Sequence record: MN871445.1 | Reading direction: 5' to 3' (one strand) | DNA length: 64,000 bases | Part shown: piece after piece, positions 3,334 to 62,886 of the stretch | How positions within the stretch are numbered: the stretch's first letter is position 1 | How the letters are laid out: every line of letters begins with the position of its first letter | The notes under the pieces: generated by a model | Database searches by the model: none | What the model was told of the DNA's origin: nothing | What the model saw: only the letters and a program-made list of their open reading frames with translations | Position numbers and translations under genes: made by a program

Positions 3334-3377
3334 TAACACTGCTAAGGGCGGGGGGTGACCTCCGCCCTTTTGTGTTA
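3334..3377 (+). terminator. Intrinsic terminator, two-tier hairpin
   Basis: AAGGGCGGGGG-GTGA-CCTCCGCCCTT (3344-3369) then TT; outer helix TAACAC/GTGTTA. Confidence 0.85.
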
Positions 3378-3395
3378 TCGATAGAGGAATAAATA

Positions 3396-5567
3396 ATGAC
3401 TGCATCAAAATTATTGCGAATCCCTACTCACGTTAAGCGCACTAACGTCTCTCTCGAAGAACGTGAAGCTGTTGCTGAGCGCGATCCGGATATTGTCGAC
3501 ATGTCTCAAACTCCTGATGACGTTAATCCTGATGATGCGGGCCAAGCTGCAACTGCTTCTTCAGAGGCGACATCTCAGGACGGTGACGTGGCAGGCTCTG
3601 CTGATGTCGCCGAGACAAGCACTGACGCGGGTGTTGCGTCTACAGAAGCTACCGGCGACGTTGCCACTGGGGCAGAACCAGATGCCGCTGCATCTGCAGA
3701 TGACACTACGGCGAGTGCCGACGAAACCCAAACCGATGAATCCGGTACCGCTGGCGGTGACGAAGCCACCTCTGCAGCGGCTGATGTCGGTGCAACTACC
3801 GATACCGAAGCCACGCCCCCGGCCGACGATAGCGTCGTAGATAGTGGTAGCGATGCTGCTAACGCCGATCTTGACGTGCAAGCTGATATCACACCGCCTG
3901 AAGAAGCACAGACCACCGAAGCAGATACCGGTTCAGATACTGCAACCGATGCCGGTGACCTGGGTGGCGATGCAGGTATTGGGGAAGATACTGGTTCTTC
4001 CGTAGAACCAGCTGCTGAGTCCACCAACACTGATGTTGAAACCACTACGGATACAACAGATGTTGATACCACCGCATCAACAGATGAAGCTGAACCAGTT
4101 GAAAATCCGGCAGCCGACATTCCGGAAGAAGCTCTTACTTCGGCCTGGGTTCAGGGCGTAGCCGTGGATAACCACGATGACGTCACCGACCTCAAAGATG
4201 GCGAAGAAGAACTGGATGTCTATCAGCACAATGAAAATGAACTTCATGATGCTGCGACCAGTCTGGAAGAGTTACGCAACTGTTGTGTCCCAGTTGCCGT
4301 TGTTACTCACACTGAAACTGATGACCTGAGCACGCCGGTGCAAACCGAAATGGTTGCTGATATCAGTGATAAAGCTGTTGACTTACTGACGGCCAGTAGC
4401 AACCAAGTACTTTCACGCCTGGGAAGTCAATTGGACCTGCCGGCAACTACTGAATCTGCAGGTACTTCGGTTGAGCGTCTTCAGGTCACCATGGAAGCCA
4501 TCGATGGTAAGCTCAAACAGATTTGGGAAGCCATCAAGAAAATGGCTGTCGCTGCCTGGGAAGCATTTGTTAATTTTGTCAAGGGCATCTTTGACAAAGC
4601 ACAACGTATTCGCAACCAGGTGAGTGGCCTGCGTAAATTCGTTGCGCAATACAAAGGCGCTACGCCAGAAGCTACTGAATTTGAAAACAACGCCGTCTGG
4701 GCCGCATGTAGTCTGGAAGTAGGTACCCAGAAATTCGAATTCGACGCAAATAAAATCTCGCCGACATTTGAAACCTACTTGAGTGCGGCGAAACCATATC
4801 TGCTGAATGCAAGCCGTGCCCTTGCGCCGGGTCTTAACATGGTCTTCGATCGGGTTGCCGCAATCGACCCGGAAAACGAGGAAACTAAGAAAGCAATGTG
4901 GGACGCATTTGGTAATCTGATGAATCGGTATACTAAATCCGTCATTATGGTTACCAAAATGGTTGGTGGCGAAACCAAACTGGGTGACCATGAATTAGAA
5001 GGTGGTTCCCTTACTGATGGGTTGCAGCCGATTTATTCTGCCCCTGGTCTGGGTGGTGGTTTCTTGTATGTCGATGTAATGGACCCGAAAGTCAGCGTAG
5101 ATGTCGCTGCGGTTGCATTCTGGAATCGTGCAGGTGCGCGGTATGTTCGGAATCATCCGGTTGTTCCAGAAGGTGCAACAGTTCAGACTCTTTCCGTTGA
5201 ACAAATGGAAACCATGCTGGATCAGATCGACGAAGCCATGGAAACTGTGTTAGAATATCGTTCAACCTTTACGGTGTTCGAACAGCAATTAGCAAAAGGT
5301 CAGCAGGCTACCTCCAAGTTGGCAAATAAACTGGAAAATAGTAGTGAGGCCAATATTGCTATTTTCGCATCGATGAAGTTGGTGCCTAAACTGACTGGAT
5401 TCAACCAAGCCGTAATCAATGGTTTGTATTTCCAATCCAGTGCGATGCTTCAATACATCGTAGCGTCTACCAAGCAATATTCAGCCAATGAAAGCGCTGT
5501 AGATTCAACAGCGCAGGGTGTGGCCGACAAGGGTGCAGGTAAACTGCCAGCACCTGAGGCAGCATAA
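3396..5567 (+). CDS. Inner head protein, phiKZ gp93-family paralog 2, with very long acidic propeptide
   Basis: About 250 aa D/E/A/T-rich region, then ATES...VTMEAIDGKLKQIWEAIKKMAVAAWEAFVNFVKGIFD, nearly the same motif as in 1896..3323. Confidence 0.85.
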   Translation: MTASKLLRIPTHVKRTNVSLEEREAVAERDPDIVDMSQTPDDVNPDDAGQAATASSEATSQDGDVAGSADVAETSTDAGVASTEATGDVATGAEPDAAASADDTTASADETQTDESGTAGGDEATSAAADVGATTDTEATPPADDSVVDSGSDAANADLDVQADITPPEEAQTTEADTGSDTATDAGDLGGDAGIGEDTGSSVEPAAESTNTDVETTTDTTDVDTTASTDEAEPVENPAADIPEEALTSAWVQGVAVDNHDDVTDLKDGEEELDVYQHNENELHDAATSLEELRNCCVPVAVVTHTETDDLSTPVQTEMVADISDKAVDLLTASSNQVLSRLGSQLDLPATTESAGTSVERLQVTMEAIDGKLKQIWEAIKKMAVAAWEAFVNFVKGIFDKAQRIRNQVSGLRKFVAQYKGATPEATEFENNAVWAACSLEVGTQKFEFDANKISPTFETYLSAAKPYLLNASRALAPGLNMVFDRVAAIDPENEETKKAMWDAFGNLMNRYTKSVIMVTKMVGGETKLGDHELEGGSLTDGLQPIYSAPGLGGGFLYVDVMDPKVSVDVAAVAFWNRAGARYVRNHPVVPEGATVQTLSVEQMETMLDQIDEAMETVLEYRSTFTVFEQQLAKGQQATSKLANKLENSSEANIAIFASMKLVPKLTGFNQAVINGLYFQSSAMLQYIVASTKQYSANESAVDSTAQGVADKGAGKLPAPEAA

Positions 5568-5602
5568 CCTCCAGGGGAGGGCGAAAGCCCTCCCCTTTAT
5601 GC
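5562..5602 (+). terminator. Intrinsic terminator, two-tier hairpin
   Basis: AGGGGAGGGC-GAAA-GCCCTCCCCT then TTATGC, which can pair with upstream GCATAA (last codon plus stop). Confidence 0.9.
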
Positions 5603-5661
5603 CCACACCTATTCTCATCCTATGACCATTTCTTTATCAAGCGGCATTAGAGGACGACATT

Positions 5662-6954
5662 ATGACTGGGTTGGTGAACACCCCACAATCAGAATTACCG
5701 AATTCCCCGACGTCGTATGCCGAAGTTCATCAGATGGTGACTGAACTCGCGCACCAACAAAACGACATTAGCAAAAAAGACCAGCAGGTGCAAGAACACA
5801 CTCAGGTCGTTGACGAGCTTCGCAATACTGGCGACATGATATCCGCATTGGGGGCTATCGTTAAATACAATATTGATGGCAAGCCAATGTCGCCGTTCCA
5901 GTCTTCACTGATGAAAAATGCCTTATGGCATAGTGGAAGCATCAGTCAAGAAGCGTATAACAGCGATACCGTCATCTCTATGGAGTCCTTACGCAAAATC
6001 CTGGCCGACATATGGGTTGCAATTAAAAACAGCCTAAAACGTCTTTTAGAGCGTTTAATTGACTTCTTAACGACATACTACGGAATGCTAAATACCGTAG
6101 AAGATTTGGCTTTGAAATTAAAAGCCATACTCAAAGAAAATAATTGGCAGACCGTAACGGTAACCTCGTTTCCATCTAACAATGCGCGCAAAATTGCCGT
6201 TGGTGGAAAACTGAAGTCAACCTGGGTGGAAGACATCGCTGGAACATTGACGGTATTAGCGGACTCGGACAAAAATGTCATTGACGCAATTGGTGACTTT
6301 AATCTTCGCGCTACCGACCAGGTAATTAAAACATTAAAAACGGATAAACTTCCCGATTTCAATTGGGCTGTGTTATCCGGCACAATCGGTACCCTGCGGC
6401 GGACTATGACTGCCACCATATCACGATATGGCGTGACATCATACGCCAAGCCTTTTGGTATTGAAACCTATTACTGTAGTGGTGTATTACCTGGCGAATG
6501 GCAATTGGGCTGTAAACAAATTCCAATTCAAAATGCCGATAGTCAGCATGATGCTGCGCGAGCAATCATTGAGGGTATGGGTGATCAGTATTTCGTCATC
6601 CTGTCTAAAGAACAAGCAGGGCCCGATGCTTTGCCATTACCTTCCTTAAACGTCATTGAATCTGCATGCGACGATATCATCAAAGTAGTCACTACGTTGA
6701 AAGATTCTACTCGCAAACTGGATGTAGAACTCAACGGCACCTTGAAAAAATCCATTGATACAATCGATGGACTGATGCACCGCATTCAGGGAAGTACCGA
6801 AATCAAAGATCGAGAAGCGGTGGACTTCGTCATGCGGGCGACTCAAATATCCAGTAAACTTAGTCGTCCTTATTTGCAATTGCTGGGAAATATCCTACCC
6901 GCATACACTCGGGCCTTATTGCAATGTGTTCTGGTCTATCGTGATGGAGCATAA
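5662..6954 (+). CDS. Inner head protein, phiKZ gp93-family paralog 3
   Basis: ISMESLRKILADIWVAIKNSLKRLLERLIDFL motif after a propeptide; SGVLPG motif matches SNVLPG and SGILPG in other paralogs. Confidence 0.8.
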   Translation: MTGLVNTPQSELPNSPTSYAEVHQMVTELAHQQNDISKKDQQVQEHTQVVDELRNTGDMISALGAIVKYNIDGKPMSPFQSSLMKNALWHSGSISQEAYNSDTVISMESLRKILADIWVAIKNSLKRLLERLIDFLTTYYGMLNTVEDLALKLKAILKENNWQTVTVTSFPSNNARKIAVGGKLKSTWVEDIAGTLTVLADSDKNVIDAIGDFNLRATDQVIKTLKTDKLPDFNWAVLSGTIGTLRRTMTATISRYGVTSYAKPFGIETYYCSGVLPGEWQLGCKQIPIQNADSQHDAARAIIEGMGDQYFVILSKEQAGPDALPLPSLNVIESACDDIIKVVTTLKDSTRKLDVELNGTLKKSIDTIDGLMHRIQGSTEIKDREAVDFVMRATQISSKLSRPYLQLLGNILPAYTRALLQCVLVYRDGA

Positions 6955-6990
6955 ACTCAATGAGGGAGGCTAATGGCCTCCCTTTTATGC
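6949..6990 (+). terminator. Intrinsic terminator, two-tier hairpin
   Basis: AGGGAGGC-TAATG-GCCTCCCT then TTTATGC, pairing with GCATAAA at 6949. Confidence 0.85.
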
Positions 6991-6996
6991 TGAATA

Positions 6997-7255
6997 TAAA
7001 AAAATACTATTTAGGATTACAATTTGAGTACACTTGGGGATGAAACATAAAAGACCTAAGGAAACGTTCCGTGCGAAGCACTCCACGTTACTATCACTAA
7101 TTAAAAAAGATAAAATAAATATACTTAGTAAGAAAGAAAAAAGATCTTAGATTTGGGGGTTTGGGGGAGGGGTAGGAGGAGCGAAGCTCCTCCGTAGGGG
7201 AGGGCCATAAAACATGATCGTGTGGGGAAGGGAAGTAAACCCTTCCCAAATATGC
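6997..7255. other. Structured non-coding element A (GNA mini-hairpins, A-tract, G-tracts)
   Basis: No credible ORF. Two GCGAAGC mini-hairpins (7071-7081, 7175-7193), A-rich tract 7100-7142, five G-runs 7155-7204, hairpin 7225-7247 followed by AAATATGC; layout shared with 48573-48737. Confidence 0.7.
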
Positions 7256-7312
7256 TGATTAATCGTTATTCAGAATTATCGTGTGTTTAACTCTACTAAG
7301 AGGTTTACTATT

Positions 7313-7750
7313 ATGAAACATTCTATTGTCCCTACACAAGCACCTAAATTCAGTATGATGGTAGGTTCCAGATCGTTGGAGACGGGTGTCAAGCTCACCT
7401 TAGAAGGCAATGGTCGCATTGATTTCTCACCGGTAATGTCCCAGGTGGTTGCGCCGAACAATGCACTGCAATCGACGGCATATTGGTCAGAGCGCGAACC
7501 ATCAACCTACTTTCTTAGTCTAGGCCAATATTCGTGTACGCCGTGTGGAATCATCAAATTCCATGAGGGGGATGTTGAAGAACCTAATGGAACGACGGTG
7601 GAGTCTTTGCTTCATGTCGTTGAACATCGACTCGAGTACCATCAATCCGGCGAATATCCCTGTAAGGAAAATGCAGCGGCATTGAGTGCCGTACGGGCCG
7701 CTTTGGTCGCGTTACATCATCGTAGCGAAAAACAAGGAAAAGTATCATGA
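7313..7750 (+). CDS. tad1: Tad1-like (Thoeris anti-defence 1 family) immune-signal sponge, divergent
   Basis: IKFHEG...NGTTVESLLHVVEHRLEYHQSGEYPCKENAAALSAVRAALVALHHR aligns with the recalled cbTad1 core IKFQKG...[46 protein letters not shown]. ATG at 7313 after AAGAGG. Confidence 0.75.
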   Translation: MKHSIVPTQAPKFSMMVGSRSLETGVKLTLEGNGRIDFSPVMSQVVAPNNALQSTAYWSEREPSTYFLSLGQYSCTPCGIIKFHEGDVEEPNGTTVESLLHVVEHRLEYHQSGEYPCKENAAALSAVRAALVALHHRSEKQGKVS

Positions 7751-12252: not shown

Positions 12253-13617
12253 ATGGCCTACACCGATACCGCGCTACAGGCCGATATAAAACGCGTTATT
12301 CATAGTAACAGCCAAGTGTACTCGACTTACACGATTGAGATACACTGTGGCACGTCTACAACGGTGATTACGCCATTAAAATTGTTGTCGATAGATACTT
12401 TGCACGACTATGAAAAAGGTTTTGCAGAGGAAAAACAGATTGAAGTCATTTTGGTTGAAAATGATTATCAGTCTTATATTTTCCCAAACAGGGATAATTT
12501 AAAGATAACCATTATTAGGTCTCCAATTGGTGTTGTTAGCGATAGCAAAAACTATAATGGCGTAAATACGGCTAAGACCTATAGGGCCACGTTAGTGGAC
12601 CCCTCACCGGCAAGGACCAACGAAGGTAAGGGGTTTGCTTCGGCTCAGGGGGATTATTCTAGCCAGATGATGATTTCAGTCAAATTTCAGTTGATTGATT
12701 TGGCCGTGGAACAGATGATGTTAACGAGCACTGGAGGTATCTTTAGAAACTCCACTCCAGGAAATACTCTGAAAGCCCTATTAACAACACTGTCACAAGG
12801 ACTGAAATTAGATGATGCGGATGCCGTGAAAGGAGTGAACATGGTTGACGCAGACAACATCAAACAAAGGACGCATCTGTTGGTTGACCAGGGGACCAAA
12901 CTGTATGATTTGGCCGATCATATCCATCAGAACTGCGGGGGGATTTATAACACTGGGGTAAGTTGTTATTACCATGCCAATTACTGGCATGTATTCCCGC
13001 CGTATGATGTCACCAGAATCAGTAAATCAACCAAAACCATGACCCTTATGTTGGTGCGTACGCCGGAGTTACCCGATTCAGATAGCACGTATTTACAGGA
13101 CGGAAATACCCTTTATGTAGTATCAAACGGTACTACGTTGCATATTGACCAGGTCGACCATCAAGCCGTGAATGCAGGTAATGGTGTCAGATATGCAAGG
13201 GCGACTGATTTGTTTGATAATTTTATTGATACCACCAAACAAGCAATGGCCACATCAACGGCAAATGTAATGAATGCGTTTATTACAAATAAACGAGATA
13301 GTGGTCTGAGTAACGCCCCGTTTTCCAAAAATAGAGTCACTGATAACGATTGTTTGGAATTATCAAAATTATCCCAAAGGCAAGGACAGCAAATCCAAGT
13401 CCAATGGGATAAGGCAGATCCGTCGTTGATTATTCCAGGCATGCCCGTTAAAGTGCTTTATGAATCGGAACGATTAGTTTATCAATTAGTAGGTACCATC
13501 CTCAACGTACAAAGTCAAGTACGTATGAATCAACCGGGTATGACGACCACCCGGTACGTCACTGGGGTTAGCATGACTTTATTCGTCACGGTAGACAAAA
13601 CCAGTACTGCCGCATAA
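12253..13617 (+). CDS. Probable baseplate hub-like virion protein
   Basis: 454 aa, beta-rich, C-terminal QVQWDKADPSLIIPGMPVKV resembles the end of T4 gp27-like hubs; assignment is inference. Confidence 0.5.
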   Translation: MAYTDTALQADIKRVIHSNSQVYSTYTIEIHCGTSTTVITPLKLLSIDTLHDYEKGFAEEKQIEVILVENDYQSYIFPNRDNLKITIIRSPIGVVSDSKNYNGVNTAKTYRATLVDPSPARTNEGKGFASAQGDYSSQMMISVKFQLIDLAVEQMMLTSTGGIFRNSTPGNTLKALLTTLSQGLKLDDADAVKGVNMVDADNIKQRTHLLVDQGTKLYDLADHIHQNCGGIYNTGVSCYYHANYWHVFPPYDVTRISKSTKTMTLMLVRTPELPDSDSTYLQDGNTLYVVSNGTTLHIDQVDHQAVNAGNGVRYARATDLFDNFIDTTKQAMATSTANVMNAFITNKRDSGLSNAPFSKNRVTDNDCLELSKLSQRQGQQIQVQWDKADPSLIIPGMPVKVLYESERLVYQLVGTILNVQSQVRMNQPGMTTTRYVTGVSMTLFVTVDKTSTAA

Positions 13618-13646
13618 TCGGGAGGGCGAAAGCCCTCCCTTTATGT
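13612..13646 (+). terminator. Intrinsic terminator, two-tier hairpin
   Basis: GGGAGGGC-GAAA-GCCCTCCC then TTTATGT; outer helix GCATAA/TTATGT. Confidence 0.9.
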
Positions 13647-13668
13647 CATTTTTATAAAACCATCAAAT

Positions 13669-15008: not shown

Positions 15009-15062
15009 TTGGGTCCTTGGACCCAACTACCTATACCTTTATTTTTATTTTGAGGTGGTATT

Positions 15063-16699: not shown

Positions 16700-16736
16700 A
16701 CCCACAGGGGAGAGCTGCAGCTCTCCCCTTTTATGC
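16694..16736 (+). terminator. Intrinsic terminator, two-tier hairpin
   Basis: AGGGGAGAGC-TGCA-GCTCTCCCCT then TTTATGC, pairing with GTATAAA. Confidence 0.9.
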
Positions 16737-16761
16737 CGTTGATAAACCACATGGTGATATC

Positions 16762-18899: not shown

Positions 18900-18935
18900 G
18901 GGAGAGGCTTCGGCCTCTCCCCCCATTACTTTTTT
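18900..18935 (+). terminator. Intrinsic terminator
   Basis: GGGAGAGGC-TTCG-GCCTCTCCC, with T-tract at 18930-18935. Confidence 0.8.
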
Positions 18936-18961
18936 ATTTTTTGTTTTAATGGAGGTTTATT

Positions 18962-19468
18962 ATGGTTGAAGTAAAGTTGCAAGTAACCTACGAATCAGAA
19001 TTACTCCCACCAGTTTATGTTACCGACCATCTGTATTTAGGTGAATCTGGTGCATGCATCATTTACATGCTAGGCACTGAAATTAACGGGATGTTTATTC
19101 GATACGCTACCGCAGATGCTCCTCAAACACTCGAGAACATTATTAAACTGGGTGCGGCTACCAATTCCCTGGTTAAAGCTTATGCCGGTAATACGGCGCA
19201 GCCTGTGATTGTTATTACAGGCACTTTAACCGCTGATGTTTTTGCATCGAAAGAAATGAAATTGACATCAGTGGCGCTGCGCATGGGTGCAATCATATTT
19301 GCCAAAGCAGACTACCTCGGCACTTATCCGCCAAGCAAAACCGCAACACCATCCCAACAGTACCTTTGCTTTGACGCCAGTATGTCTAGCGATTACGTTA
19401 CTGCCGCGGTGGAGCAGGTAGTCGCAGTTAATCTTAAGAAAGCCATTATTGCTAAGTTCTATAGTTAA
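18962..19468 (+). CDS. Hypothetical protein
   Basis: GGAGG SD, 168 aa. Confidence 0.7.
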   Translation: MVEVKLQVTYESELLPPVYVTDHLYLGESGACIIYMLGTEINGMFIRYATADAPQTLENIIKLGAATNSLVKAYAGNTAQPVIVITGTLTADVFASKEMKLTSVALRMGAIIFAKADYLGTYPPSKTATPSQQYLCFDASMSSDYVTAAVEQVVAVNLKKAIIAKFYS

Positions 19469-19507
19469 CGGCATAAAAGGGAGGGCGAAAGCCCTCCCAA
19501 TATGTTG
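19465..19507. terminator. Bidirectional terminator; exact inverted copy of 56016-56058
   Basis: GGCATAAAA-GGGAGGGC-GAAA-GCCCTCCC-AATATGTT between convergent genes. Confidence 0.9.
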
Positions 19508-19509
19508 TC

Positions 19510-21731: not shown

Positions 21732-23927
21732 ATGTCCCGACTCTCGAATAACACCGACTTCACCGCCAACTCTGACTTGGTCAAAGCAATCGGCGGTACC
21801 CTGTCTACTCAGGGAGCCCAGCTGGTTCCGAATCAACTGACCCAAGCGGTCATTTCTATGGAAGGTTTTGCGGACGAATCCGTGCGTAACAACGTACAGA
21901 TGTCGGCGGCTAACCTGCGTAACACCATCAAACAGTGTTTTGATACTGTTGGTAAAACTCGCGGCCTGAACTACAAACTGAGCGAACAGCAGCTGGAAGC
22001 GGCAGCCATCGTTGCGGCAGCACGCCCACGCGCTAAAGACTTTGCTCTGGCGTCCCGTTCTGGTCAGATTTCTCTCGAAGGCATCGATCTGCCAGCATCC
22101 GGTACCGCGTTCGGTTCCCTGAACTTCCGCGCGCCGAGCGAAGCCCTGGTCTCCATGGAAGCGTTCGACAACTCCGAACTGCAGAAAGGCATCGACGTTT
22201 CCGTCGTCTTCAACGCCCTGGCCGTTGGCCAGTCTCCGTTCAACGAAGAATGGTTCCCGCCGGTTGTGGGTACTCCGGATGAAATCGTATTCCGCATCAA
22301 TGTGCCGCGTATCCTGGTACAGAACGAATACATTCCGCCGAACCTGTCCGGTGACCCGGCCGACTTCAAAAAGAAAAACCTGATCCGCGCAGCGCTGGAT
22401 TACACGATCCTGATGAACAACTCTACTGAGATTGTTCCGATCTATCGTACCGGTGTTAACACCGACAAATTCGTTAACCTGGCACTGATCGGCGGCCAGC
22501 CGCTGAAAGCTATGGTTGGCGCTGTTGAAGTTGATACCGCCCCGCTGAAACCGGGCGTTAAAGTATCTCTGCTGAACCTGGCGTCCAACGAAGCCCTGAA
22601 ACTGGCTGGCGTTGTGAGCGAAACTGATGCTGTTGAACCAAAAGTGTCTCTGAAAAACCTGTACGTCCTGGTGACTGACAGTTCTTCGAGCGCTGGCGCT
22701 TCTTCCGTTATCAAATTCAAAGTCAAAGATTATCCGCGCGCCGGTTTCTTCAAACCGATGCAGGGTAACATCCGTGAGATGGACCTGGCCTTCCGTTCCG
22801 ACGTGCTGACCATCAAACCGGATACCAAAGACATCGCAGGCGCAGCACCGACTGCCCTGGCTGCACTGATCTCCGCAGGCTACACCCTGCGTCTGGACGC
22901 GTCCCTGAACGGCGACCTGAACATGGAAACCAGCAACCTGACTACTCAGGCTGGCGCGGTAACTGCCGCCTCCATGCTGGATGAAGATGGTAAAGCACTG
23001 TCTCTGGACAGCACCGAAGCTACTGCCATCCTGGATAACCTGACCTTTGCCGTACTGGGCTTCGACCTCGACGCTCGTCGTACCAACAGCAACCTGCGTA
23101 CCAAAGGCCTGATCCTGAACCCGGATATGGAACAGCGTCCGTACTACGTTCCGCTGAACGCACCGCTGGTGTCTCAGACTCCGATCGGTCAGGAACAGCT
23201 GGGCCTCGACCTGAACGCACTGGTTCAGGGTGTGCATATCCAAATCGAAAACAACGCAGTTACCACTCTGCTGAGCTACGCTGAAAGCCTGAAAGACCGT
23301 TTCATTTCTTCCGAAGTGATCGATCTGTATCCGTCTTTCGAAGCCGTCGGCGAACTGCTGGTCGCACCGTACTTCAAAGAAATCACCATCGACATGGTGC
23401 TGGCTCTGAACTCAGTATCTTCTGCGAATCGTGTAAACGACATCCAGGGCGTACTGAACGCGGTTATCCGTCAGGAAATGGCTCACGTTCTGCGTGAAAC
23501 TGGTTATACCGTCGCACTGCGCGCAAACAACGGTGGCGCAATCGAAAACCCGCACGTTATCGCGGTAACTGACCTGCTCCTGGAACGTTATCTGATGACC
23601 AACGGTGACGACCGTTACCTGGGCACCAACGCATCCTTCAGCGTCACCGCTGTAAGCGACCTGCGTATGCGTGACACCATCTTCCTGAGCTTCGGCCGTA
23701 AAGCCACTGGCAAACACGACCCGCTGACCTTCGGTAACATGCTGTACATTCCGGAGCTGTCAGTTTCTGCACAGGTCAACCGTAACGGCGCAACCATCTC
23801 TGAACGTCAAGTTCAGCCGCGTTTCCGCCACGTAGTTAACCTGCCGATCCTGGTGAAAATCAACGTCACCCGTCTGGCAGAAGCATCTCAGGATGCAGCT
23901 ATCATTTACAACAAACCGCAGGCCTAA
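21732..23927 (+). CDS. Major capsid protein precursor (phiKZ gp120-like)
   Basis: 731 aa; protease sites ISME, ISLE, VSME (E143); extreme high-expression codon bias; helicase-hypothetical-capsid synteny. Confidence 0.92.
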   Translation: MSRLSNNTDFTANSDLVKAIGGTLSTQGAQLVPNQLTQAVISMEGFADESVRNNVQMSAANLRNTIKQCFDTVGKTRGLNYKLSEQQLEAAAIVAAARPRAKDFALASRSGQISLEGIDLPASGTAFGSLNFRAPSEALVSMEAFDNSELQKGIDVSVVFNALAVGQSPFNEEWFPPVVGTPDEIVFRINVPRILVQNEYIPPNLSGDPADFKKKNLIRAALDYTILMNNSTEIVPIYRTGVNTDKFVNLALIGGQPLKAMVGAVEVDTAPLKPGVKVSLLNLASNEALKLAGVVSETDAVEPKVSLKNLYVLVTDSSSSAGASSVIKFKVKDYPRAGFFKPMQGNIREMDLAFRSDVLTIKPDTKDIAGAAPTALAALISAGYTLRLDASLNGDLNMETSNLTTQAGAVTAASMLDEDGKALSLDSTEATAILDNLTFAVLGFDLDARRTNSNLRTKGLILNPDMEQRPYYVPLNAPLVSQTPIGQEQLGLDLNALVQGVHIQIENNAVTTLLSYAESLKDRFISSEVIDLYPSFEAVGELLVAPYFKEITIDMVLALNSVSSANRVNDIQGVLNAVIRQEMAHVLRETGYTVALRANNGGAIENPHVIAVTDLLLERYLMTNGDDRYLGTNASFSVTAVSDLRMRDTIFLSFGRKATGKHDPLTFGNMLYIPELSVSAQVNRNGATISERQVQPRFRHVVNLPILVKINVTRLAEASQDAAIIYNKPQA

Positions 23928-23941
23928 TCGCCACGGTAGTT

Positions 23942-23980
23942 GCATAGACCTAGGGAGGGCGAAAGCCCTCCCTTTTATGC
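23942..23980 (+). terminator. Intrinsic terminator, two-tier hairpin
   Basis: GCATA-GACCT-AGGGAGGGC-GAAA-GCCCTCCCT-TT-TATGC. Confidence 0.9.
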
Positions 23981-23993
23981 CGCCACTGTAATG

Positions 23994-29258: not shown

Positions 29259-29264
29259 CATAAC

Positions 29265-29304
29265 GGCATAAAGGGAGAGGCTTCGGCCTCTCCCTGTTTA
29301 TGTT
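29265..29304. terminator. Bidirectional terminator, two-tier hairpin
   Basis: GGCATAAA-GGGAGAGGC-TTCG-GCCTCTCCC-TG-TTTATGTT between convergent genes. Confidence 0.9.
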
Positions 29305-29320
29305 GCCTTTTATTTTTTCT

Positions 29321-40758: not shown

Positions 40759-41370
40759 ATGATTACGGTAGATATTCTTAAATTGATTGGTGCAGCGCAA
40801 GTAGCTGTAGCCCATCCGCAAGGAAGCTTATTTGTTGAAACATTTAACGGCATTACGGGAACCACGACATTGGCAGCAACCGTATCGGGTACGGAAGCTC
40901 TTGCAGCATTCGAAAAATTGGATGTAACAAATCAGGTTAAAGTCAATGCTATTTTTGACCAGTATCGCAAAGTAATAACAGGTTGTGGTGCAACTACGGT
41001 ATTTGCTAATGGCGTACATCGTCAACGTAACTACCGTAGTTTCATGGCACTGATGATGGCGGTTGCTTTAACGATCATGGCGGTCACTATCGTCGCCATT
41101 GAATGTTATATCGGCATCATGACTAAGACTCAATTGGAAAGCGGTCAGTTTACGGTTCCGTTGATGTGCCTTGCATTGGTGGTGTGGAGTTATAATGGAC
41201 TGCTGACAAAAGAAAACCGGGAAGCCATCGCTGCTGGGTTGGCTCGAGCACCCAGTGGTTTTGTTAACAGTTTTCTGGATTCTATCCGCGGACGTAATCA
41301 GTACCAGACCACGATGCAACAACAACCCGCGCCTCAGCCGGACGACCCACAAAATCAAAGACCACAATAA
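40759..41370 (+). CDS. Two-transmembrane-helix membrane protein
   Basis: Two hydrophobic segments and a Q/P-rich C-terminal tail. Confidence 0.7.
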   Translation: MITVDILKLIGAAQVAVAHPQGSLFVETFNGITGTTTLAATVSGTEALAAFEKLDVTNQVKVNAIFDQYRKVITGCGATTVFANGVHRQRNYRSFMALMMAVALTIMAVTIVAIECYIGIMTKTQLESGQFTVPLMCLALVVWSYNGLLTKENREAIAAGLARAPSGFVNSFLDSIRGRNQYQTTMQQQPAPQPDDPQNQRPQ

Positions 41371-41372
41371 CG

Positions 41373-41407
41373 GCATAGGAGGAGGCTTTCGCCTCCTCCT
41401 TTTATGC
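41373..41407. terminator. Bidirectional terminator, two-tier hairpin
   Basis: GCATA-GGAGGAGGC-TTTC-GCCTCCTCC-TTT-TATGC. Confidence 0.9.
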
Positions 41408-42652
41408 GGTCACTAATTCAATTCTTTTAATATCCATTCTTCTTACTTCGGCATAGGTTCTTGGTTGCGGACCAACTAAACTGTTGTTGACAATCCCAGA
41501 ACTGCTAGCAGATACGGTATGTCGGGTCGATTGGTCAACAAGATAACCATCAATAACGACGACATAATCATCGATTTCTTTTTCTACTACGTATTCAGCT
41601 AATCTACCCATATTAACGCGCATGGGTTCGGTGGGGGCCGTATCAGACTGAATATAAACCCCAGGTAACCCAGTGGGTTGCATCGCGGCATATTCCACAA
41701 CAACGTTTGTTGCGTCCACTACGATTAAAAAAGTTTGGGGTGAATTCAACATTTTTGTAATAGTGTCGTCAGATAAGAAAATATCGAGGTTGACGCGATC
41801 TGGGTTATGGTCTGATTCGTAAGGCACATAAACATCGGACCAGTCGATATAGTTTCTAGAATCGAAATAGCGTGAAACCAAATCCATATTTCGGGTATTG
41901 ATTTTCAACATTCGATTACCGACAACATCATAATTGTTATCCAGGGCAAACAAATATCCCATCCAGGATAACAACACAGTTTTTCCGAATAAATCAACGT
42001 TTGTTTTGACGTACACTGATTCATAACTCGGTACGTCTGGCTCGGGGTCAACCACCATGTCTGAGGTGATGTCCACTTGGGTAATTGAACCGATACCCGA
42101 AAAATCAAGAAAACCCACTAATGGCTTATTTGCTTTACGTGCTGAAATGACGCCATCAAGGACATAGACACCATCTGAGGTGCTGGATATCCGATGACAA
42201 AACCCATTGACGGTCGCAATACAATTTTGCTCTACATTGCTGTAATTTACTCCGGCCTTAGATAAAAGAATATCTACCTGTTGGTCGTAATCTAAAACGG
42301 CATCTGGGGATTTGGTGTGGTCACTTGGTTTTGATTTGAATCCCCAGTAAAATGCATCTACGTGGCGGACGGTCGTAGTGCCCTCAACCAGAACACTATA
42401 GGTTACTGGAAGTGACGTATTGCCGATTTGACCTAGCCACGTAACAAAAGTAATTGTCAATACTCTGAGGTAATCTGGCAAATCATCGAAGTCAACCGTA
42501 GCCGCGGAACTGTACGCCGGATTCGTAACGGTCGCTTTTATCTCCGAGTAAGTATTGTACACTTGATACAGGGGAATGGTGGATAAATCGATGGACTTCC
42601 ATTCGACACCACCCCCCTTGACACGGGCGATAGCGCTAACGTATGTATACAT
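41402..42652 (-). CDS. Probable virion structural protein
   Basis: 416 aa, beta-rich, CIATVNGFCHR and YLFALD motifs; divergent from the tail fibres. Confidence 0.6.
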   Translation of the reverse strand: MYTYVSAIARVKGGGVEWKSIDLSTIPLYQVYNTYSEIKATVTNPAYSSAATVDFDDLPDYLRVLTITFVTWLGQIGNTSLPVTYSVLVEGTTTVRHVDAFYWGFKSKPSDHTKSPDAVLDYDQQVDILLSKAGVNYSNVEQNCIATVNGFCHRISSTSDGVYVLDGVISARKANKPLVGFLDFSGIGSITQVDITSDMVVDPEPDVPSYESVYVKTNVDLFGKTVLLSWMGYLFALDNNYDVVGNRMLKINTRNMDLVSRYFDSRNYIDWSDVYVPYESDHNPDRVNLDIFLSDDTITKMLNSPQTFLIVVDATNVVVEYAAMQPTGLPGVYIQSDTAPTEPMRVNMGRLAEYVVEKEIDDYVVVIDGYLVDQSTRHTVSASSSGIVNNSLVGPQPRTYAEVRRMDIKRIELVTA

Positions 42653-46790: not shown

Positions 46791-46804
46791 AAAATAACAG
46801 GGAT

Positions 46805-46854
46805 ATAGTTGGTGATTGGAGGGGTTATCCTTCGGTCACCAACTATGTTTTATG
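46805..46854 (+). terminator. Long hairpin between endolysin and spanins
   Basis: ATAGTTGGTGATTGGAGG-GGTTAT-CCTTCGGTCACCAACTAT (18 bp with G-U pairs), then GTTTTATG. Confidence 0.55.
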
Positions 46855-46871
46855 TCGCCTTAGGAGGCGCT

Positions 46872-47282: not shown

Positions 47283-47460
47283 CTTCAATGACCGGATGCA
47301 AATCTTTTTACGTAATAAAGATGGCCAAATCCGGTTCTCCCAAAAGGATGCTACGTGGCTGACTTTATTCGCAGGGGAAGCCGATAGCGTAACACAACAA
47401 ATGTCCGGATTGCAGGAACAAACTACACTGGACCGTAACCTCATCAATCAGAAAAAATAA
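47134..47460 (+). CDS. Rz1: Outer-membrane lipoprotein spanin (o-spanin)
   Basis: Lipobox LTAC (Cys20); overlaps the i-spanin 3' end by 149 nt in another frame. Confidence 0.8.
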   Translation: MTLLIKLSSFLILCAALTACTPKQIVEKPVVIQQSLEPVSAQLMQPHPNNFNDRMQIFLRNKDGQIRFSQKDATWLTLFAGEADSVTQQMSGLQEQTTLDRNLINQKK

Positions 47461-47499
47461 CAACATAACTGGAGGAGGCTTTCGCCTCCTCCTATGCTG
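47461..47499. terminator. Two-tier hairpin without a T-tract
   Basis: CAACATA-ACT-GGAGGAGGC-TTTC-GCCTCCTCC-TATGCTG. Confidence 0.75.
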
Positions 47500-47587
47500 C
47501 GTGTAATCTATTTTAAGAAGACCAAAAATACTTTGATGTAACCGCCCAACTCTATTATAATAACGTCGTATAATTGTTCTTAGGCAG

Positions 47588-48535: not shown

Positions 48536-48572
48536 GGTAATTCCTCTTTTACTGGAGTAAATACAAATAATG

Positions 48573-48737
48573 TAAAAAAATACTGGCTTGACTAATTCAA
48601 TGCCCTATTACTTAGGTTTGGACCTTCCTGCCACGTAGTGGCGTTTATGATCTTAATATAAAAGAGAGATCATAGAAATAAGTATATTAAGATCAGATCC
48701 GGGGATATACCCATGGAGGTATATCCCTTATATGCCG
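48573..48737. other. Structured non-coding element B (homologous to 6997-7255)
   Basis: TAAAAAAATACT, TATTAC (48606), GCCAC-GTA-GTGGC (48630-48642), A-rich tract, AAGATCAGATCCGGGG, hairpin 48702-48727 then TTATATGCCG. Confidence 0.65.
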
Positions 48738-48836
48738 TCTAAACCTAAAAGATAGGATACTGTCAGATAATGTCCAAGCTAAAATTATATCGATGAGAAA
48801 CATATTTTAGTAGCCCATCACGGTGAGTAATTAACC

Positions 48837-51287
48837 ATGGAATTAGATTCTCTTTTATTGGTGGGGTATAGACCCTTCCTGTTGAACAACATCAATGAAT
48901 TACTCTATACCCCACAGAGTGCGTATCAAATCATCTTAGGGATGAACGGGTGTGGTAAATCTTCACTGATGCGTGAATTGAGTCCTCTGCCTGCGACTCC
49001 CGGGGATTTTACTGAAGGTGGGGTAAAGAAATGGATTGGTCGTCACGAAGGGAACCAATACGAACTGAATAGTGAAATCGGTAAACGAAGTGCGAAGCAC
49101 TCTTTTATTTGTAACGGGGAAGAATTAAACCCTGGCGGTACCGGCGCCGTACAGAAAGAATTAGTACAACAACATTTTAAATTAACCCCCGAAATACACC
49201 AGGTACTGCTTGGTAAAACCCGGGTTAAATTCACTAACATGGCACCGGCTAAACGTCAAGAGTGGTTTCAACTCATCGCTCCAGTCGACATCAGTATTGC
49301 TCGCAAACAGTATCAATACTTTCTTAGTAAGGGACGTTCTCTTACAGAAGTCGAAAAACATCAAAAGCAAGAGTTGGTGGAGGCCAGTAAACGTTTAGGT
49401 GATGGGGTTGCGGTTCGATTACTTGAAGAAGAAATCCAAAAGTTAAGAGAACAAGCCCAGATTTATATGGAGGCCAAAGTTCCCGTCACCACGACGCAAG
49501 CAATCAGTTTATCCGAACTGGAGAAAGCCAGTCGAGACGTACTTAATTTTATTCCGGATACAGACTACCCAACTACCGATAGTGTCATGTTGGGAATTGC
49601 AGCCACTGAGCAGAAAATTGATGGCTTGGAGCGTCGCTACAAGGAACACGTTGACGCGTGCGTTAGAATTGAAAAACAGATTGCAGAAATTGGTGACATT
49701 GGTCATTTAGATATTTCATTGCTGATGGAACAATTAGGTCAGTTAGCCGCTGAATTAGCAGTGTGCTCGGTCAGGGAACATGTTGTTCCAGAATCTCAGG
49801 TCAATTCTGTTATTGATATGGTTTCTGCTAGAATGACGGAAATTACCCAAGTACTCGGAACCATGCCAGTTAAACGAGATGATTTTACTAAGGAGCAGTG
49901 GACCTCTCGTGGCGATATTTTAAATCGGTTGATGACGACTATTCAGAGTGACGAATACAAATTAACCAATCTTCAAAATCAGTTATATCAAGTAGAGTCG
50001 GCGCAATCGGTTAAATGCCCAGCATGTGACCATCAATTTAAACCCGGTATCGAGCACAATGCAGCAGACCACATTAAATCACTTATAGAAAGCACCAATT
50101 TAAGCATACTCACCAATAAGGCTCAAGCAGATAAACAGCGAGAATACCTGGATGAGTTTGAGGCATGGTACGGACCAGCCAAACAACTTGCAAGTTTGTT
50201 GAATAGCGAAAGCATGCATTATGTTAAAGAGATGCTGTATGGGTTGGATGATTTATGGACTGCCCCCCGAAAGGCTATTCCTGAGTTGATGTCTTGGCTC
50301 AATACCTTGAAAGAATATCAGCACTATTTATCTTTACGTGATGCCCATGCAACTACCCAAAAAACCTACAGCATGGCAGTAGATGCTACCGCCAAAGCAA
50401 AACGCCAACAGGTGGATGCGTATAAACAACAATACGCAGATGAAGAACTTGCATTATCTAAAGTGCAGTCAAACCTATTAGGCTGTAGGGAAACCTTAAC
50501 CCGGTTAATTCAAATTAAACGTAGATACGTGGAGTTTGAACAGAACCAAACTGTCCTGTTACAGCAATACAATAAAACCATCGATGCTGAGATCGCCTAC
50601 GCAAATCGTGGCTTTAATGCCATTCTTGATAATTACATTGGGGAGATACATAGTCGATTGGGTCTGTTGGAAAATCAACGGATTGCTTTGATACAGGCCG
50701 CAAGTCATGTAGAGAGATTGAATGCGTCTTTAAAAGTATTGTCGCAAGATATAGAGGCATGTCAGGTATTGGCCTCTATTCTTTCCCCCAAGGATGGTTT
50801 TATCGCAGAACAGTTATCAACTTCAGTAAATGCACTGTGCGATGCCATGAATGCGGTTATTCGAAACGTTTGGACTTACGACCTAGAAATATTGCCGTGT
50901 GGAGTAGATTCAGGGGAGCTTAATTATAAATTCCCCTTACGAGTCTACGGTAATGATGAATTGCCTCTCGACGATATCTGTGAAGGGAGTGAGTCTCAAT
51001 GTGAGATGGTCAATTTAGCATTTAGATTGATTGTAATGGCATATTTATCGCTTGCCGGATATCCGCTTTATTTGGATGAACTTGGTAGGGAATTTGATGA
51101 AACCCATGGAAGTCGAGTGATGCAATATTTGAAATTATTGGTTGACTCCCAACAAGTGAGTCAGGTATTTCTTATCTCACATAACCCGGCGTTACATAGC
51201 GTATTTACATTAGCGGATGTAAACATCATCAACACAACCAATATCACCCTTCCGGCGGAGTATAATACCTGCATGACGATACAATAA
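48837..51287 (+). CDS. sbcC: SbcC/Rad50-like SMC ATPase
   Basis: Walker A GMNGCGKS, long coiled coils, CPAC zinc hook, signature SESQ, Walker B LYLDE, H-loop LISH. Confidence 0.93.
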   Translation: MELDSLLLVGYRPFLLNNINELLYTPQSAYQIILGMNGCGKSSLMRELSPLPATPGDFTEGGVKKWIGRHEGNQYELNSEIGKRSAKHSFICNGEELNPGGTGAVQKELVQQHFKLTPEIHQVLLGKTRVKFTNMAPAKRQEWFQLIAPVDISIARKQYQYFLSKGRSLTEVEKHQKQELVEASKRLGDGVAVRLLEEEIQKLREQAQIYMEAKVPVTTTQAISLSELEKASRDVLNFIPDTDYPTTDSVMLGIAATEQKIDGLERRYKEHVDACVRIEKQIAEIGDIGHLDISLLMEQLGQLAAELAVCSVREHVVPESQVNSVIDMVSARMTEITQVLGTMPVKRDDFTKEQWTSRGDILNRLMTTIQSDEYKLTNLQNQLYQVESAQSVKCPACDHQFKPGIEHNAADHIKSLIESTNLSILTNKAQADKQREYLDEFEAWYGPAKQLASLLNSESMHYVKEMLYGLDDLWTAPRKAIPELMSWLNTLKEYQHYLSLRDAHATTQKTYSMAVDATAKAKRQQVDAYKQQYADEELALSKVQSNLLGCRETLTRLIQIKRRYVEFEQNQTVLLQQYNKTIDAEIAYANRGFNAILDNYIGEIHSRLGLLENQRIALIQAASHVERLNASLKVLSQDIEACQVLASILSPKDGFIAEQLSTSVNALCDAMNAVIRNVWTYDLEILPCGVDSGELNYKFPLRVYGNDELPLDDICEGSESQCEMVNLAFRLIVMAYLSLAGYPLYLDELGREFDETHGSRVMQYLKLLVDSQQVSQVFLISHNPALHSVFTLADVNIINTTNITLPAEYNTCMTIQ

Positions 51288-51333
51288 TCATATGGCTACT
51301 GCTATCCTTACTTACTCATTTGATTGAATTAAC

Positions 51334-51369
51334 AACATATCGGGAGGGCTTTCGCCCTCCCATTTTTTT
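51334..51369. terminator. Bidirectional terminator
   Basis: AACATATC-GGGAGGGC-TTTC-GCCCTCCC-ATTTTTTT. Confidence 0.9.
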
Positions 51370-51370
51370 G

Positions 51371-56014: not shown

Positions 56015-56015
56015 T

Positions 56016-56058
56016 CAACATATTGGGAGGGCTTTCGCCCTCCCTTTTATGCCGTTAA
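56016..56058. terminator. Bidirectional terminator; exact inverted copy of 19465-19507
   Basis: CAACATATT-GGGAGGGC-TTTC-GCCCTCCC-TTTTATGCCGTTAA. Confidence 0.9.
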
Positions 56059-56930: not shown

Positions 56931-56938
56931 TGACCCCT

Positions 56939-58609: not shown

Positions 58610-58722
58610 AATTGTGTCCTTTATGGGTTGCGGGATTATAGGAGTAGGAAATAATGAGCGTCATATTTTACGGATGCTAGGCATTACATGTACAGAATGA
58701 CATCTTTTATTGAGGAAGCCTC

Positions 58723-60162: not shown

Positions 60163-60179
60163 ATTAAGGTATAATCATA

Positions 60180-60578: not shown

Positions 60579-60582
60579 ACCC

Positions 60583-60864: not shown

Positions 60865-60919
60865 TGGTTTGCTAGCGACGATTCAATAGAGTCGTCGCAT
60901 CATCCATTGCGAGGTTATC

Positions 60920-61585
60920 ATGTCAAACAGAAAAGCAGCAGAAACCCTCATCCTTGATACTTTGGCTAAAATCGATAATAACGGACCTAATCGAGGTATT
61001 TGGACCAAGAAATTTTCAACTATGTCCGATGAAGCCTTTGAGGCTTTTATTGACGCCCTAGATTCCGGCGAACAAACATTACACATGTTTGTACCAAATA
61101 AATCGGAACACGGCGTAGACGCACTGCGCAATATTAAAATAGCCAAGGAATTGGGGCATGATTTCTTTGAACGTCTGTGGTTAACCGATGAACGTACGGG
61201 GAAAACATTTTTGACTCCCAAGAAGTACATGGTTATCGACATGATCGTTCGTCGACAAGAACAAACATTAGAAAAGAAAATCAGCATTCCAGATCACAAT
61301 CGCACTATCGACGATATGACTGGCCAACCCACCGGGGATTCTAAAGGCAGCGCAATCTCGTTCCCAGAATTTCAAATTTTAACTTCAAAAGACCTGGATA
61401 GATCAATCGAAGAATTATTTAAAGTTCGCGGTGGAGATGAAAAAGCATTCCGTGAACAAAATAGACTTATTCTTCAAACCGGCGAGGGGCCTTTAGATAC
61501 CCTAAAACAAACCCCTACTCGCGTAAGGTCTACTGAATCACTTAAGTGCATTTTACTGGCTATGCACATGGGTAACTCATTATGA
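60920..61585 (+). CDS. rpoB: Virion RNA polymerase beta subunit, C-terminal part (phiKZ gp149-like)
   Basis: YMV...RRQEQTLEKK...MTGQPTGDSKGSAISFPE...ELFKVRGGD parallels RpoB YMLKL...VTQQPLGG...EMLTVKSDD. Confidence 0.9.
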   Translation: MSNRKAAETLILDTLAKIDNNGPNRGIWTKKFSTMSDEAFEAFIDALDSGEQTLHMFVPNKSEHGVDALRNIKIAKELGHDFFERLWLTDERTGKTFLTPKKYMVIDMIVRRQEQTLEKKISIPDHNRTIDDMTGQPTGDSKGSAISFPEFQILTSKDLDRSIEELFKVRGGDEKAFREQNRLILQTGEGPLDTLKQTPTRVRSTESLKCILLAMHMGNSL

Positions 61586-62112
61586 TAACTGATGCACTTT
61601 CTTCCGAACACACTCGTCTAATGAGCGAGGCAATTGGCATTGCCACGCAATATTTTCATGAAGCCCTATCACAAGAGTTACTGGGTGAATACACCGCCGA
61701 CCAACAACAAAAAATTATACGTGATTGTCTTGGATTAGTCACTAATCCTACATGGTTTCAGGCGTTGAATGAAACTAACCTTAAGTCTTTATGGATGGCA
61801 ATACGTAGCAACCCACACACTGAAGCGGTAACATTATCTACGGCTCAAAGACTCAGGGTGTTTTATAACGAACAGACTTGGGGAGAAATTATATCCAGGT
61901 TAGCTTCCTCGACAAAAATCTTTACCCCAGCAAATAAAAAGTATAGTGTTTTCACCGAGGAAGAATTGGGGCGCATGGGTTGCGTCAATGCATTGGATTA
62001 TCTGGCTAATAATACCTGGGTAGTTCCACTCATGCTATTGAATCAAATCGAATACAGCGCACTGCTGTCAGATAAGACGCGGGTAATTTACAATAAATCC
62101 GTTAAGGGGTAA
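61582..62112 (+). CDS. Conserved hypothetical protein
   Basis: ATGA overlap; NNTWVVPLMLL. Confidence 0.7.
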   Translation: MITDALSSEHTRLMSEAIGIATQYFHEALSQELLGEYTADQQQKIIRDCLGLVTNPTWFQALNETNLKSLWMAIRSNPHTEAVTLSTAQRLRVFYNEQTWGEIISRLASSTKIFTPANKKYSVFTEEELGRMGCVNALDYLANNTWVVPLMLLNQIEYSALLSDKTRVIYNKSVKG

Positions 62113-62115
62113 ATC

Positions 62116-62862
62116 ATGGCCGGAGATCGTTTACTGGTTGATTTAGATTCTATCTTGGATTTTAGATTATCCACCCTGGCCATTCTCAATGACGAGTACG
62201 CCAGTACTTTAATTGGAAATCCAAAATATATTGATAGAACCAGAGATGATGAGTTCTATTTGGCTGGAGGTATTTCACATACCGAATACCTTATGACGTA
62301 TGGTAATCGAGGGATTGATTTCAAACACCACGTGGCCAAACCCACCGGTATTTTTATGTTGTTGGGTAAAATCATTTCTGAGCGTTTGGTTCGTTCTGAA
62401 GCACCTTTATCAGAACGAAAATTTTATATTGAAATAAATGTTTATCCATTTAGACTCAATGAGGATGCTTGCAGGTCTATCGCAAATGCAGTAGCCATTT
62501 ATCTGGATACACAACTCTACATCGAGACGGTATCCTATTCCCCAACCCAACTTACCCCCAACTTAATTCGCGATACTTATAGTGACGTTGTACTCTATGA
62601 TTTCAATGAGTGGTATGTCGCTAATCACTTAACCGTCCCGGGTATCTTCATGCCGGAAGTTAGGTTTCATACTCCGGCAATTGCCAGAGGTAAGCGAGTT
62701 AATGAAATGGACCAAGATATTTTGCGGGAAGTTGTCGATACCACGGGTTCACTGAACCCATTTGAAGTGACCATGTACGAGTTATCAGATAACTTGTCGC
62801 TTCGGTATGAAGACACCCGTTTCTTTACAATAGAAACTGCTTCCAAACCGGTTGGGGCATAA
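62116..62862 (+). CDS. Conserved hypothetical protein
   Basis: LLVDLDSILDFRL start (HAD-like DxD), INVYPFRL. Confidence 0.7.
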   Translation: MAGDRLLVDLDSILDFRLSTLAILNDEYASTLIGNPKYIDRTRDDEFYLAGGISHTEYLMTYGNRGIDFKHHVAKPTGIFMLLGKIISERLVRSEAPLSERKFYIEINVYPFRLNEDACRSIANAVAIYLDTQLYIETVSYSPTQLTPNLIRDTYSDVVLYDFNEWYVANHLTVPGIFMPEVRFHTPAIARGKRVNEMDQDILREVVDTTGSLNPFEVTMYELSDNLSLRYEDTRFFTIETASKPVGA

Positions 62863-62886
62863 GAGAGGGCAATTGCCCTCTCTATT
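62857..62886. terminator. Bidirectional terminator
   Basis: GCATA-AGAGAGGGC-AATT-GCCCTCTCT between convergent genes. Confidence 0.8.

Follow-up and report, generated by a model that had tools for sequence, protein, structure and literature searches.

The GC-rich hairpins tailed by the word TATG in the jumbo phage KpHz_2 belong to the terminator family published for phages phiKZ and 201phi2-1, and KpHz_2 is a new and distant member among its carriers. The elements were followed from a window of 64,000 nucleotides (nt), the whole stretch of DNA analysed, which is identical to bases 62001-126000 of MN871445, the unannotated record of the 270-kb KpHz_2 genome. It is probable that they act as hairpin-dependent (intrinsic-type) terminators of a family conserved among phiKZ-like jumbo phages. 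An additional basal helix, formed by CAUA and UAUG on the two sides of the stem, is supported in part, and a promoter function of TATG is not. The assignment is carried by the enrichment of the motif next to hairpins, its dependence on gene orientation, its conservation across genera and the position of RNA 3' ends in two relatives.

KpHz_2 infects Klebsiella pneumoniae and carries the record name 'Serratia phage KpHz_2'. It is closely related to Klebsiella phage Eowyn (98% identity) and to KpGz_1 (81%). The gene for a phiKZ-type major head protein lies at window positions 21732-23927; the capsid protein has at most 34% identity to that of any other phage group and is ~27% identical to that of phiKZ. 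Public sequencing runs containing KpHz_2 are wastewater and other metagenomes, in contig form. The whole genomes of KpHz_2 and KpGz_1 were scanned for perfect, GC-rich, intergenic hairpins with stems of at least 7 bp including at least 5 GC pairs, and TATG was counted at offsets -1 to 5 from the stem. The 79 hairpins found in KpHz_2 provide 158 sides. These counts are lower bounds, the strict scan having overlooked a long imperfect hairpin of ~20 bp at 46803-46857 that is followed by TTTATGTCG.

The window has about 20 intergenic GC-rich hairpins, most of them of one family exemplified by GGGAGGGC-GAAA-GCCCTCCC. A preliminary description of the window had placed TATG no more than about 5 nt from the stem, on one or both strands, and this was confirmed for 14 of 20 hairpins, where chance (~10%) predicts about two (binomial p = 2e-10). 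In the complete KpHz_2 genome TATG is found on 78 of 158 intergenic hairpin sides (49%), compared to 5.1% of random intergenic positions and 2.6% genome-wide, and in KpGz_1 on 74 of 170 sides. The word depends on gene orientation: it occupies 61 of 102 sense sides (60%) and 17 of 56 antisense sides, and only 4 of 64 intragenic hairpins, a distribution that locates the elements where genes or transcription units end. TATG starts 2 or 3 nt from the stem on 57 of the 78 sides and at offset 0 or -1 in nine tails. Stems are GC-rich with short loops, most intergenic hairpins of KpHz_2 carrying tetraloops (GAAA, TTCG, TTTC).

The conserved sequence extends beyond TATG, to T(1-4)-ATG-YY-G-T (position matrix T/A-T-A-T-G-Y-Y-G-T), with pyrimidines in 90-100% of cases at positions +1 and +2, G in ~80% at +3 and T in ~65% at +4. 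This longer form is specific to hairpins, TATGYYG accounting for 47 of 67 hairpin-adjacent intergenic TATGs versus 11 of 169 other intergenic TATGs, the latter being close to the 6% expected from composition. The canonical uninterrupted U-rich tract of 7-9 nt is not present; tails read UUUAUGCC or AAUAUGUU. Some TATG tails lack a U-tract, as first noticed in the preliminary description, at the plus side of 47493 and the minus side of 41377. The elements of the window, together with one gene discussed below, are the following.

5573-5605, plus strand: terminator between tandem plus-strand genes; hairpin 5573-5596, tail T-TATGCCCA; the upstream CATA at 5563-5566 overlaps the GCA-TAA with which the upstream gene ends.
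6963-6993, plus strand: terminator after the gene at 5662-6954; hairpin 6963-6983, tail TT-TATGCTGA.
7225-7258, plus strand: hairpin (7225-7247) followed by AAA-TATGCTGA, 35 nt upstream of the gene at 7283-7750.
13620-13649, plus strand: terminator between tandem plus-strand genes, GGGAGGGC-GAAA-GCCCTCCC with tail TT-TATGTCAT; the upstream CATA overlaps a GCA-TAA stop.
16706-16739, plus strand: terminator between tandem plus-strand genes, tail TT-TATGCCGT; KpHz_2 has TATA as the upstream arm where KpGz_1 has CATA.
19468-19508, both strands: bidirectional terminator between convergent genes; hairpin 19479-19498, plus tail AA-TATGTTGT, minus tail TTT-TATGCCGT; the loop is inverted in KpGz_1.
23939-23983, plus strand: terminator after the major head protein gene; hairpin 23952-23973, tail TT-TATGCCGC, CATA 5 nt upstream of the stem.
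29263-29306, both strands: bidirectional terminator between convergent genes; hairpin 29272-29295, plus tail TATGTTGC, minus tail TATGCCGT.
41370-41410, both strands: bidirectional terminator between convergent genes; hairpin 41377-41400, plus tail TT-TATGCGGT; the minus tail TATGCCGT begins within the last stem base and therefore leaves no U-tract.
47460-47500, both strands: bidirectional terminator between convergent genes; hairpin 47471-47492; the plus tail TATGCTGC adjoins the stem with no U-tract, minus tail AGT-TATGTTGT.
48702-48738, plus strand: hairpin followed by TTA-TATGCCGT in a divergent intergenic region, ~100 nt upstream of an SbcC-like gene.
51332-51370, unstranded: convergent junction; hairpin 51342-51361, minus tail GA-TATGTTGT; the plus strand lacks TATG and has a plain T-tract as its tail (ATTTTTTTG), so that a basal helix is impossible there.
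56015-56055, both strands: bidirectional terminator between convergent genes; hairpin 56025-56044, plus tail TTT-TATGCCGT, minus tail AA-TATGTTGA.
62854-62883, minus strand: convergent junction; hairpin 62862-62883; the motif TATGCCCC, on the minus strand only, overlaps the GCA-TAA end of a plus-strand gene.
3334-3377, plus strand: terminator of non-TATG type; hairpin 3344-3369, tail TTTGTGTT, complementary flanks TAACAC/GTGTTA.
25200-26825, plus strand: gene whose product is homologous to phiKZ gp123 (33% identity overall), the beta-like subunit of the non-virion RNA polymerase.

In phiKZ, ONT-cappable-seq led to 61 predicted intrinsic terminators that share a stem-loop and the sequence TTAT-K-YY-G-T (Putzeys et al. 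2024, PMC10914365). The KpHz_2 elements have the same GC-rich stem-loop directly followed by TTAT-K-YY-G-T, are likewise present in many copies, mostly intergenic, and are bidirectional between convergent genes. They differ in the polarity of the stem, whose C-rich arm comes first in phiKZ while the G-rich arm comes first in KpHz_2 (GGGAGGGC...GCCCTCCC). The phages differ also in the enterobacterial host of KpHz_2 and in their capsids. The phiKZ terminator word thus reaches enterobacterial jumbo phages with capsids only ~27% identical, and provides a rule to mark the ends of transcription units in an unannotated 270-kb phage and its relatives.

Phage 201phi2-1 has a motif A at 59 sites; 21 terminators contain, in addition to A, a motif B that 'elongates the hairpin', and in a reporter assay with uninfected P. 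chlororaphis terminators with several motifs were stronger than those with one (PMC11512511). Motif A resembles the phiKZ motif and has the same 3' tail as KpHz_2, with a predicted two-tier fold. Those of the multi-motif terminators that were examined carry CATA arms upstream, as in KpHz_2, and the fraction of elements with both parts is similar, 21/59 in 201phi2-1 and 24/55 in KpHz_2. Judging from the eight mapped sites, motif B would correspond to the CATA arm. The long stem was linked by the authors of that study to resistance to antitermination, whereas in KpHz_2 the second arm appears to be mostly a terminator of the opposite strand. The two-tier architecture proposed in the preliminary description has therefore a published counterpart in this elongated hairpin (PMC11512511). 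The motif proves longer (TATG-Y-Y-G-T) than the four bases recognised in that description.

The position of RNA 3' ends could be read in these two relatives. Coordinates of eight termination sites were published for 201phi2-1 (PMC11512511). Each is found 8 nt past the stem, on the plus strand, and seven lie precisely at the border of YY and the conserved G, as after TTTATGTT and before GTC. At the eighth site (189851) the motif is shifted by one base and the end is still found 8 nt past the stem. For phiKZ, RNA-seq contigs from four public runs were compared to a locus 99.7% identical to phiKZ 117245-121948. At the capsid-gene terminator contigs from two studies break at position 3385, that is after the stem (3358-3377) and UUUAUGUU. 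The Illumina adapter directly follows the break in run X21, where depth falls from 159 to 13; it falls from 668 to 243 in run X24, and read-through RNA is present past the terminator. RNA of both phages consequently ends 2 nt downstream of the G of TATG, which places this word inside the RNA tail and not at a start site. From the homologous motif, RNA of KpHz_2 would also end after TATG-YY and before the G. This fixed end, common to seven of eight 201phi2-1 sites and one phiKZ site, sharpens the published motif into a testable rule.

Just past the phiKZ capsid-gene terminator (L023 3387-3422), 36 bases are shared by a highly covered X24 contig from elsewhere, in which a different hairpin tail precedes them. 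Sequence after terminators is thus repeated in phiKZ.

The terminator behind the capsid gene was compared in ten metagenomic and reference relatives, among them 201phi2-1 and a near-copy of phiKZ. No two have the same stem, while the tail TTATG-YY-G-TC is found in eight of ten; of the two exceptions, L019 has a T-rich tail without TATG and L022 has no hairpin listed. In an alignment of nine capsid-gene terminators (eight relatives and KpHz_2) no column is invariant except those of TTATG and the G at +3, the alignment being otherwise poor, with stems that vary in length and polarity, and usable for these columns only. At the same site the motif is found also in Erwinia phage Ea35-70 and Ralstonia phage RSF1, and as a TATT variant in Serratia phage 2050HW, while SPN3US and Vibrio phage BONAISHI lack it and show plain T-runs instead. 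In RSF1 (L032), ~52-100 nt past the capsid gene, the main stem itself has CATA and TATG at its base, and a second TTATGCTGT 3 nt later makes the tail.

Of the 79 hairpins, 68 could be aligned between KpHz_2 and KpGz_1. In these, TATG, CATA and the outer GTT/AAC are conserved, whereas the two bases between TATG/CATA and GTT/AAC and the spacer bases vary freely. Loops are often reverse-complemented between orthologues (GAAA versus TTTC), with stem and flanks unchanged, as at window positions 19479-19498 and at MN871445 positions 35292, 146323, 234129 and 254744; this suggests inversion of the hairpin or exchange between copies. A functionless mobile or repeat element was rejected as the main explanation, the tail motif being kept across genera while stems differ. 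Exchange between copies within one genome does appear to take place.

A model for the KpHz_2 elements can be drawn from these data. A GC-rich stem of 7-10 bp with a tetraloop would be followed by a tail of 8-9 nt, W(2-4)-A-U-G-Y-Y. By homology with 201phi2-1 and phiKZ the RNA would end after YY, the conserved G and the next T being the first untranscribed bases, and TATG would be part of the released RNA tail and of a weak RNA:DNA hybrid. The stem is a perfect palindrome, so that one hairpin can serve both strands, and the upstream CATA, in its fuller form A-C-N-N-C-A-T-A, would be the tail motif of the opposite strand. The result would be bidirectional terminators mostly between convergent genes, with antisense arms acting as terminators also in about a third of tandem sites. 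When both arms are present, CAUA and UAUG could pair in the released RNA, lengthening the hairpin and hiding its 3' end. The basal helix is plausibly a secondary benefit of this arrangement and not its selected core.

The upstream CATA indeed appears to be mostly the same signal read on the other strand. In the preliminary description a matching CATA was reported upstream of the stem in most cases. This is correct within the window, where it lies at 10 nt or less in 9 of 14 TATG cases, but not genome-wide, where both arms are found in 24 of 55 TATG-bearing hairpins and 32 of 78 TATG sides (41%) have no CATA partner within 10 nt. The majority seen in the window goes with its richness in convergent genes. 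Both arms occur at 15 of 27 convergent (56%) versus 9 of 48 tandem junctions (19%; odds ratio 5.4, p = 0.0018), and in the window five of seven hairpins between convergent genes carry the tail motif on both strands. Antisense arms in tandem context have G at +3 in 94% (KpHz_2) and 71% (KpGz_1) of cases, and YYG in 56-59%. RNA that ends at YY does not include the partner of this G. CATA is also conserved where no TATG faces it, as at record positions 10113, 29228 and 213534.

The mirror motif extends into coding sequence at window positions 5563-5567, 6950-6954, 13613-13617 and 62858-62862. Genes ending in CA-TAA are more frequent next to hairpins: 13 of 50 genes with a hairpin within 12 nt of their TAA stop versus 13 of 177 others (p = 0.00075).

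The organization is reminiscent of the bidirectional intrinsic terminators of bacteria (A-tract, hairpin, U-tract), in which one palindrome serves two convergent genes and has pairable mirror flanks, with the RNA end 7-9 nt past the stem as in the mapped relatives of KpHz_2. The phage elements are distinguished by the fixed word TATG-YY-G-T, sometimes without any U beside the stem, and by two arms that usually belong to different subtypes. The common two-armed cassette joins a TTTT-ATG-CCG arm to a RA-TATG-TTG arm. When such arms pair, one transcript obtains G-U pairs and the other A-C mismatches. Cassettes have nearly always one CCG and one TTG arm, perfectly complementary arms being avoided, and the two bases after TATG flip jointly between CC and TT in orthologues (47460-47467 and 56015-56022 in the window). 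An SbcC-like palindrome nuclease is encoded at window positions 48837-51287.

The strongest competitor, possible but the less probable account, holds that the CAUA/UAUG basal helix itself is selected, the two-tier hairpin raising termination efficiency or shielding the mRNA 3' end from exonucleases. The helix is found in the minimum-energy fold of every two-armed example folded (9 of 9 window elements, and 2 of 2 RNAs cut at mapped ends), and when the phiKZ capsid mRNA is ended at the mapped position, its tail is paired to the last base. The stronger terminators of 201phi2-1 are those in which co-occurring motifs elongate the stem, in a reporter test of five versus three constructs (PMC11512511), and four of the five stronger ones carry an upstream CATA. 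CATA is kept across genera at the tandem capsid-gene site without the full antisense motif, and three C-to-T differences in upstream arms between KpHz_2 and KpGz_1 would preserve a G-U pair.

Against selection of the helix stand, besides the unpartnered TATG sides, the unfaced CATA arms and the conserved base opposite G at +3, the properties of the arms themselves. In intrinsic termination the 3' arm of such a helix is still in the hybrid or the exit channel when termination occurs, and the helix cannot form beforehand. When 5' arms were swapped among two-armed hairpins, the mean longest flank helix was 4.2 bp for cognate and 5.2 bp for swapped arms, and no cognate helix reached 6 bp where swapping leads to an expectation of 7.8. 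The test skips the first flank base and replaces an extension-energy test with swapped 5' flanks, which was biased because maximal stems bar a stem-adjacent pair in cognate flanks only. Spacers on the two sides of the stem are negatively correlated. No covariation of the arms was found between KpHz_2 and KpGz_1, CATA and TATG never varying together, and the fold of the nine-terminator alignment predicts the main stem only, on a poor alignment. The claim that structure is favoured over sequence is not supported, cognate arms being less complementary than re-paired ones.

The same holds for the compensatory change proposed at 3334-3377. The predicted fold does contain the TAACAC/GTGTTA pairing, but the element is of the non-TATG type, both arms are identical in KpGz_1, and a 6-bp match is close to chance level (flank helices of at least 6 bp arise ~0.8 times per 24 hairpins with flanks randomly swapped). 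Of the shared two-tier architecture there remain sequence-specific terminators with a predicted basal helix when both arms are present; as a conserved general feature the helix is not supported, given the unpartnered sides.

Several observations weigh against the reading of the elements as terminators ending after TATG-YY with CATA as a mirror signal. The tandem 201phi2-1 sites 132419 and 183876 have an upstream CATA without G at +3, which looks more like selection of a helix. The capsid-gene terminator is tandem, yet its upstream CATA is kept in most lineages, and a need for antisense terminators at a third of tandem junctions is itself deduced. The position of the 3' end was transferred to KpHz_2 from phages with capsids only ~27% identical, and the phiKZ evidence consists of assembled contigs rather than reads, which are strandless and cannot prove absence. 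Offsets of -1 to 1 (17 of 78 tails) leave only 5-7 nt from the stem to YY.

The occurrence of the same word in promoters calls for separate consideration. TATG is the essential core of phiKZ late promoters, transcription starting at its G (Yakunina 2015, PMC4666361), and in a 2026 structure the non-template TATG is bound by gp123 in a pocket beneath the beta-lobe (PMC12809450). The KpHz_2 gp123 homologue has 10 of 14 published pocket residues identical, with Trp in place of Tyr406. In the published work covered, no discussion was found of the coincidence that the late-promoter core is also in most terminator tails. The shared word raises the question of how a polymerase with a four-base promoter tells starts from stops. 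It is conceivable, though rather unlikely, that the four bases are both start and stop signal for the non-virion RNA polymerase. The gp123 pocket would then catch TATG after the terminator hairpin during elongation, the caught enzyme would be held or scrunched for the next two or three bases, and the hairpin would release the RNA at the fixed end after TATG-YY without requiring a long U-tract. If true, this would explain why TATG, rather than a U-run, is invariant in the tails of distant jumbo phages.

Specialisation of the terminators for phage RNA polymerases, put forward in the preliminary description, is doubtful. Eight 201phi2-1 terminators of the TATG-tail type work in a reporter in uninfected P. 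chlororaphis (PMC11512511); being active with the host polymerase, they do not require phage enzymes.

The same reporter result bears on the improbable alternative that 3' ends arise by endonuclease cleavage beside a protective hairpin instead of termination. A sequence-specific tail, conserved beyond the needs of a weak hybrid, could be a nuclease site, read-through RNA exists, and 3'-end mapping alone cannot separate the two processes. However, the eight elements lower expression of a downstream reporter in uninfected cells (PMC11512511), and the distance of 8 nt from stem to end, maintained at site 189851 in spite of the shifted motif, fits hairpin-driven release.

It is very improbable that the elements are terminator-promoter hybrids, in which TATG after the hairpin would be a late promoter of the non-virion RNA polymerase firing outward from its G. 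Besides the promoter core and the conserved gp123 pocket, such a role could draw on the downstream genes available in tandem and divergent contexts, for example at 48702 and 7225. However, the phiKZ late promoter has the same four bases with no hairpin and no conserved downstream bases (Yakunina 2015, PMC4666361), and it starts within TATG whereas terminator RNA ends just past it. The validated late promoter P119L reads TATG-TAG, with no hairpin and no YYG, while YYG is hairpin-specific in KpHz_2. The motif is commonest at convergent junctions, where there is no downstream gene to express, and a GC-rich stem immediately upstream should hamper melting of promoter DNA, as deduced from the gp123 structure (PMC12809450). 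In the four phiKZ runs neither contig starts nor loose 5' ends were observed at the G of TATG, although contigs cannot prove absence. N4-type hairpin promoters were also considered and discarded; the N4 polymerase is unrelated, and there is no pointer to starts here.

The T-rich block TTTTTTATTTT was considered as the 'true' U-tract of a two-tier stem. It follows 7 of 41 TATG-type and 8 of 38 other hairpins and, its rates being alike after both kinds, is not part of the terminator. With up to one mismatch the block has 34 sites in the genome, at ~18925-18945, 15035-15060 and 29306-29320 in the window. It is positioned 10-15 nt past 15 of 79 hairpins of both kinds, often just before a ribosome-binding site. 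The block may represent the AT-rich motif that early promoters of such phages are expected to have, or else enhance translation.

Two intergenic regions of the window have a more complex organization. The 328 nt between 6955 and 7282 contain long G-runs and a set of three hairpins rich in GC, at 6963, 7175 and 7225, and may be the site of a small RNA or leader; they have no Rfam match, and an Rfam scan of the entire window gave none. The divergent region 48536-48836 carries two plus-strand modules of hairpin plus TATG (48629-48650 and 48702-48738), with no upstream plus-strand gene in need of a terminator.

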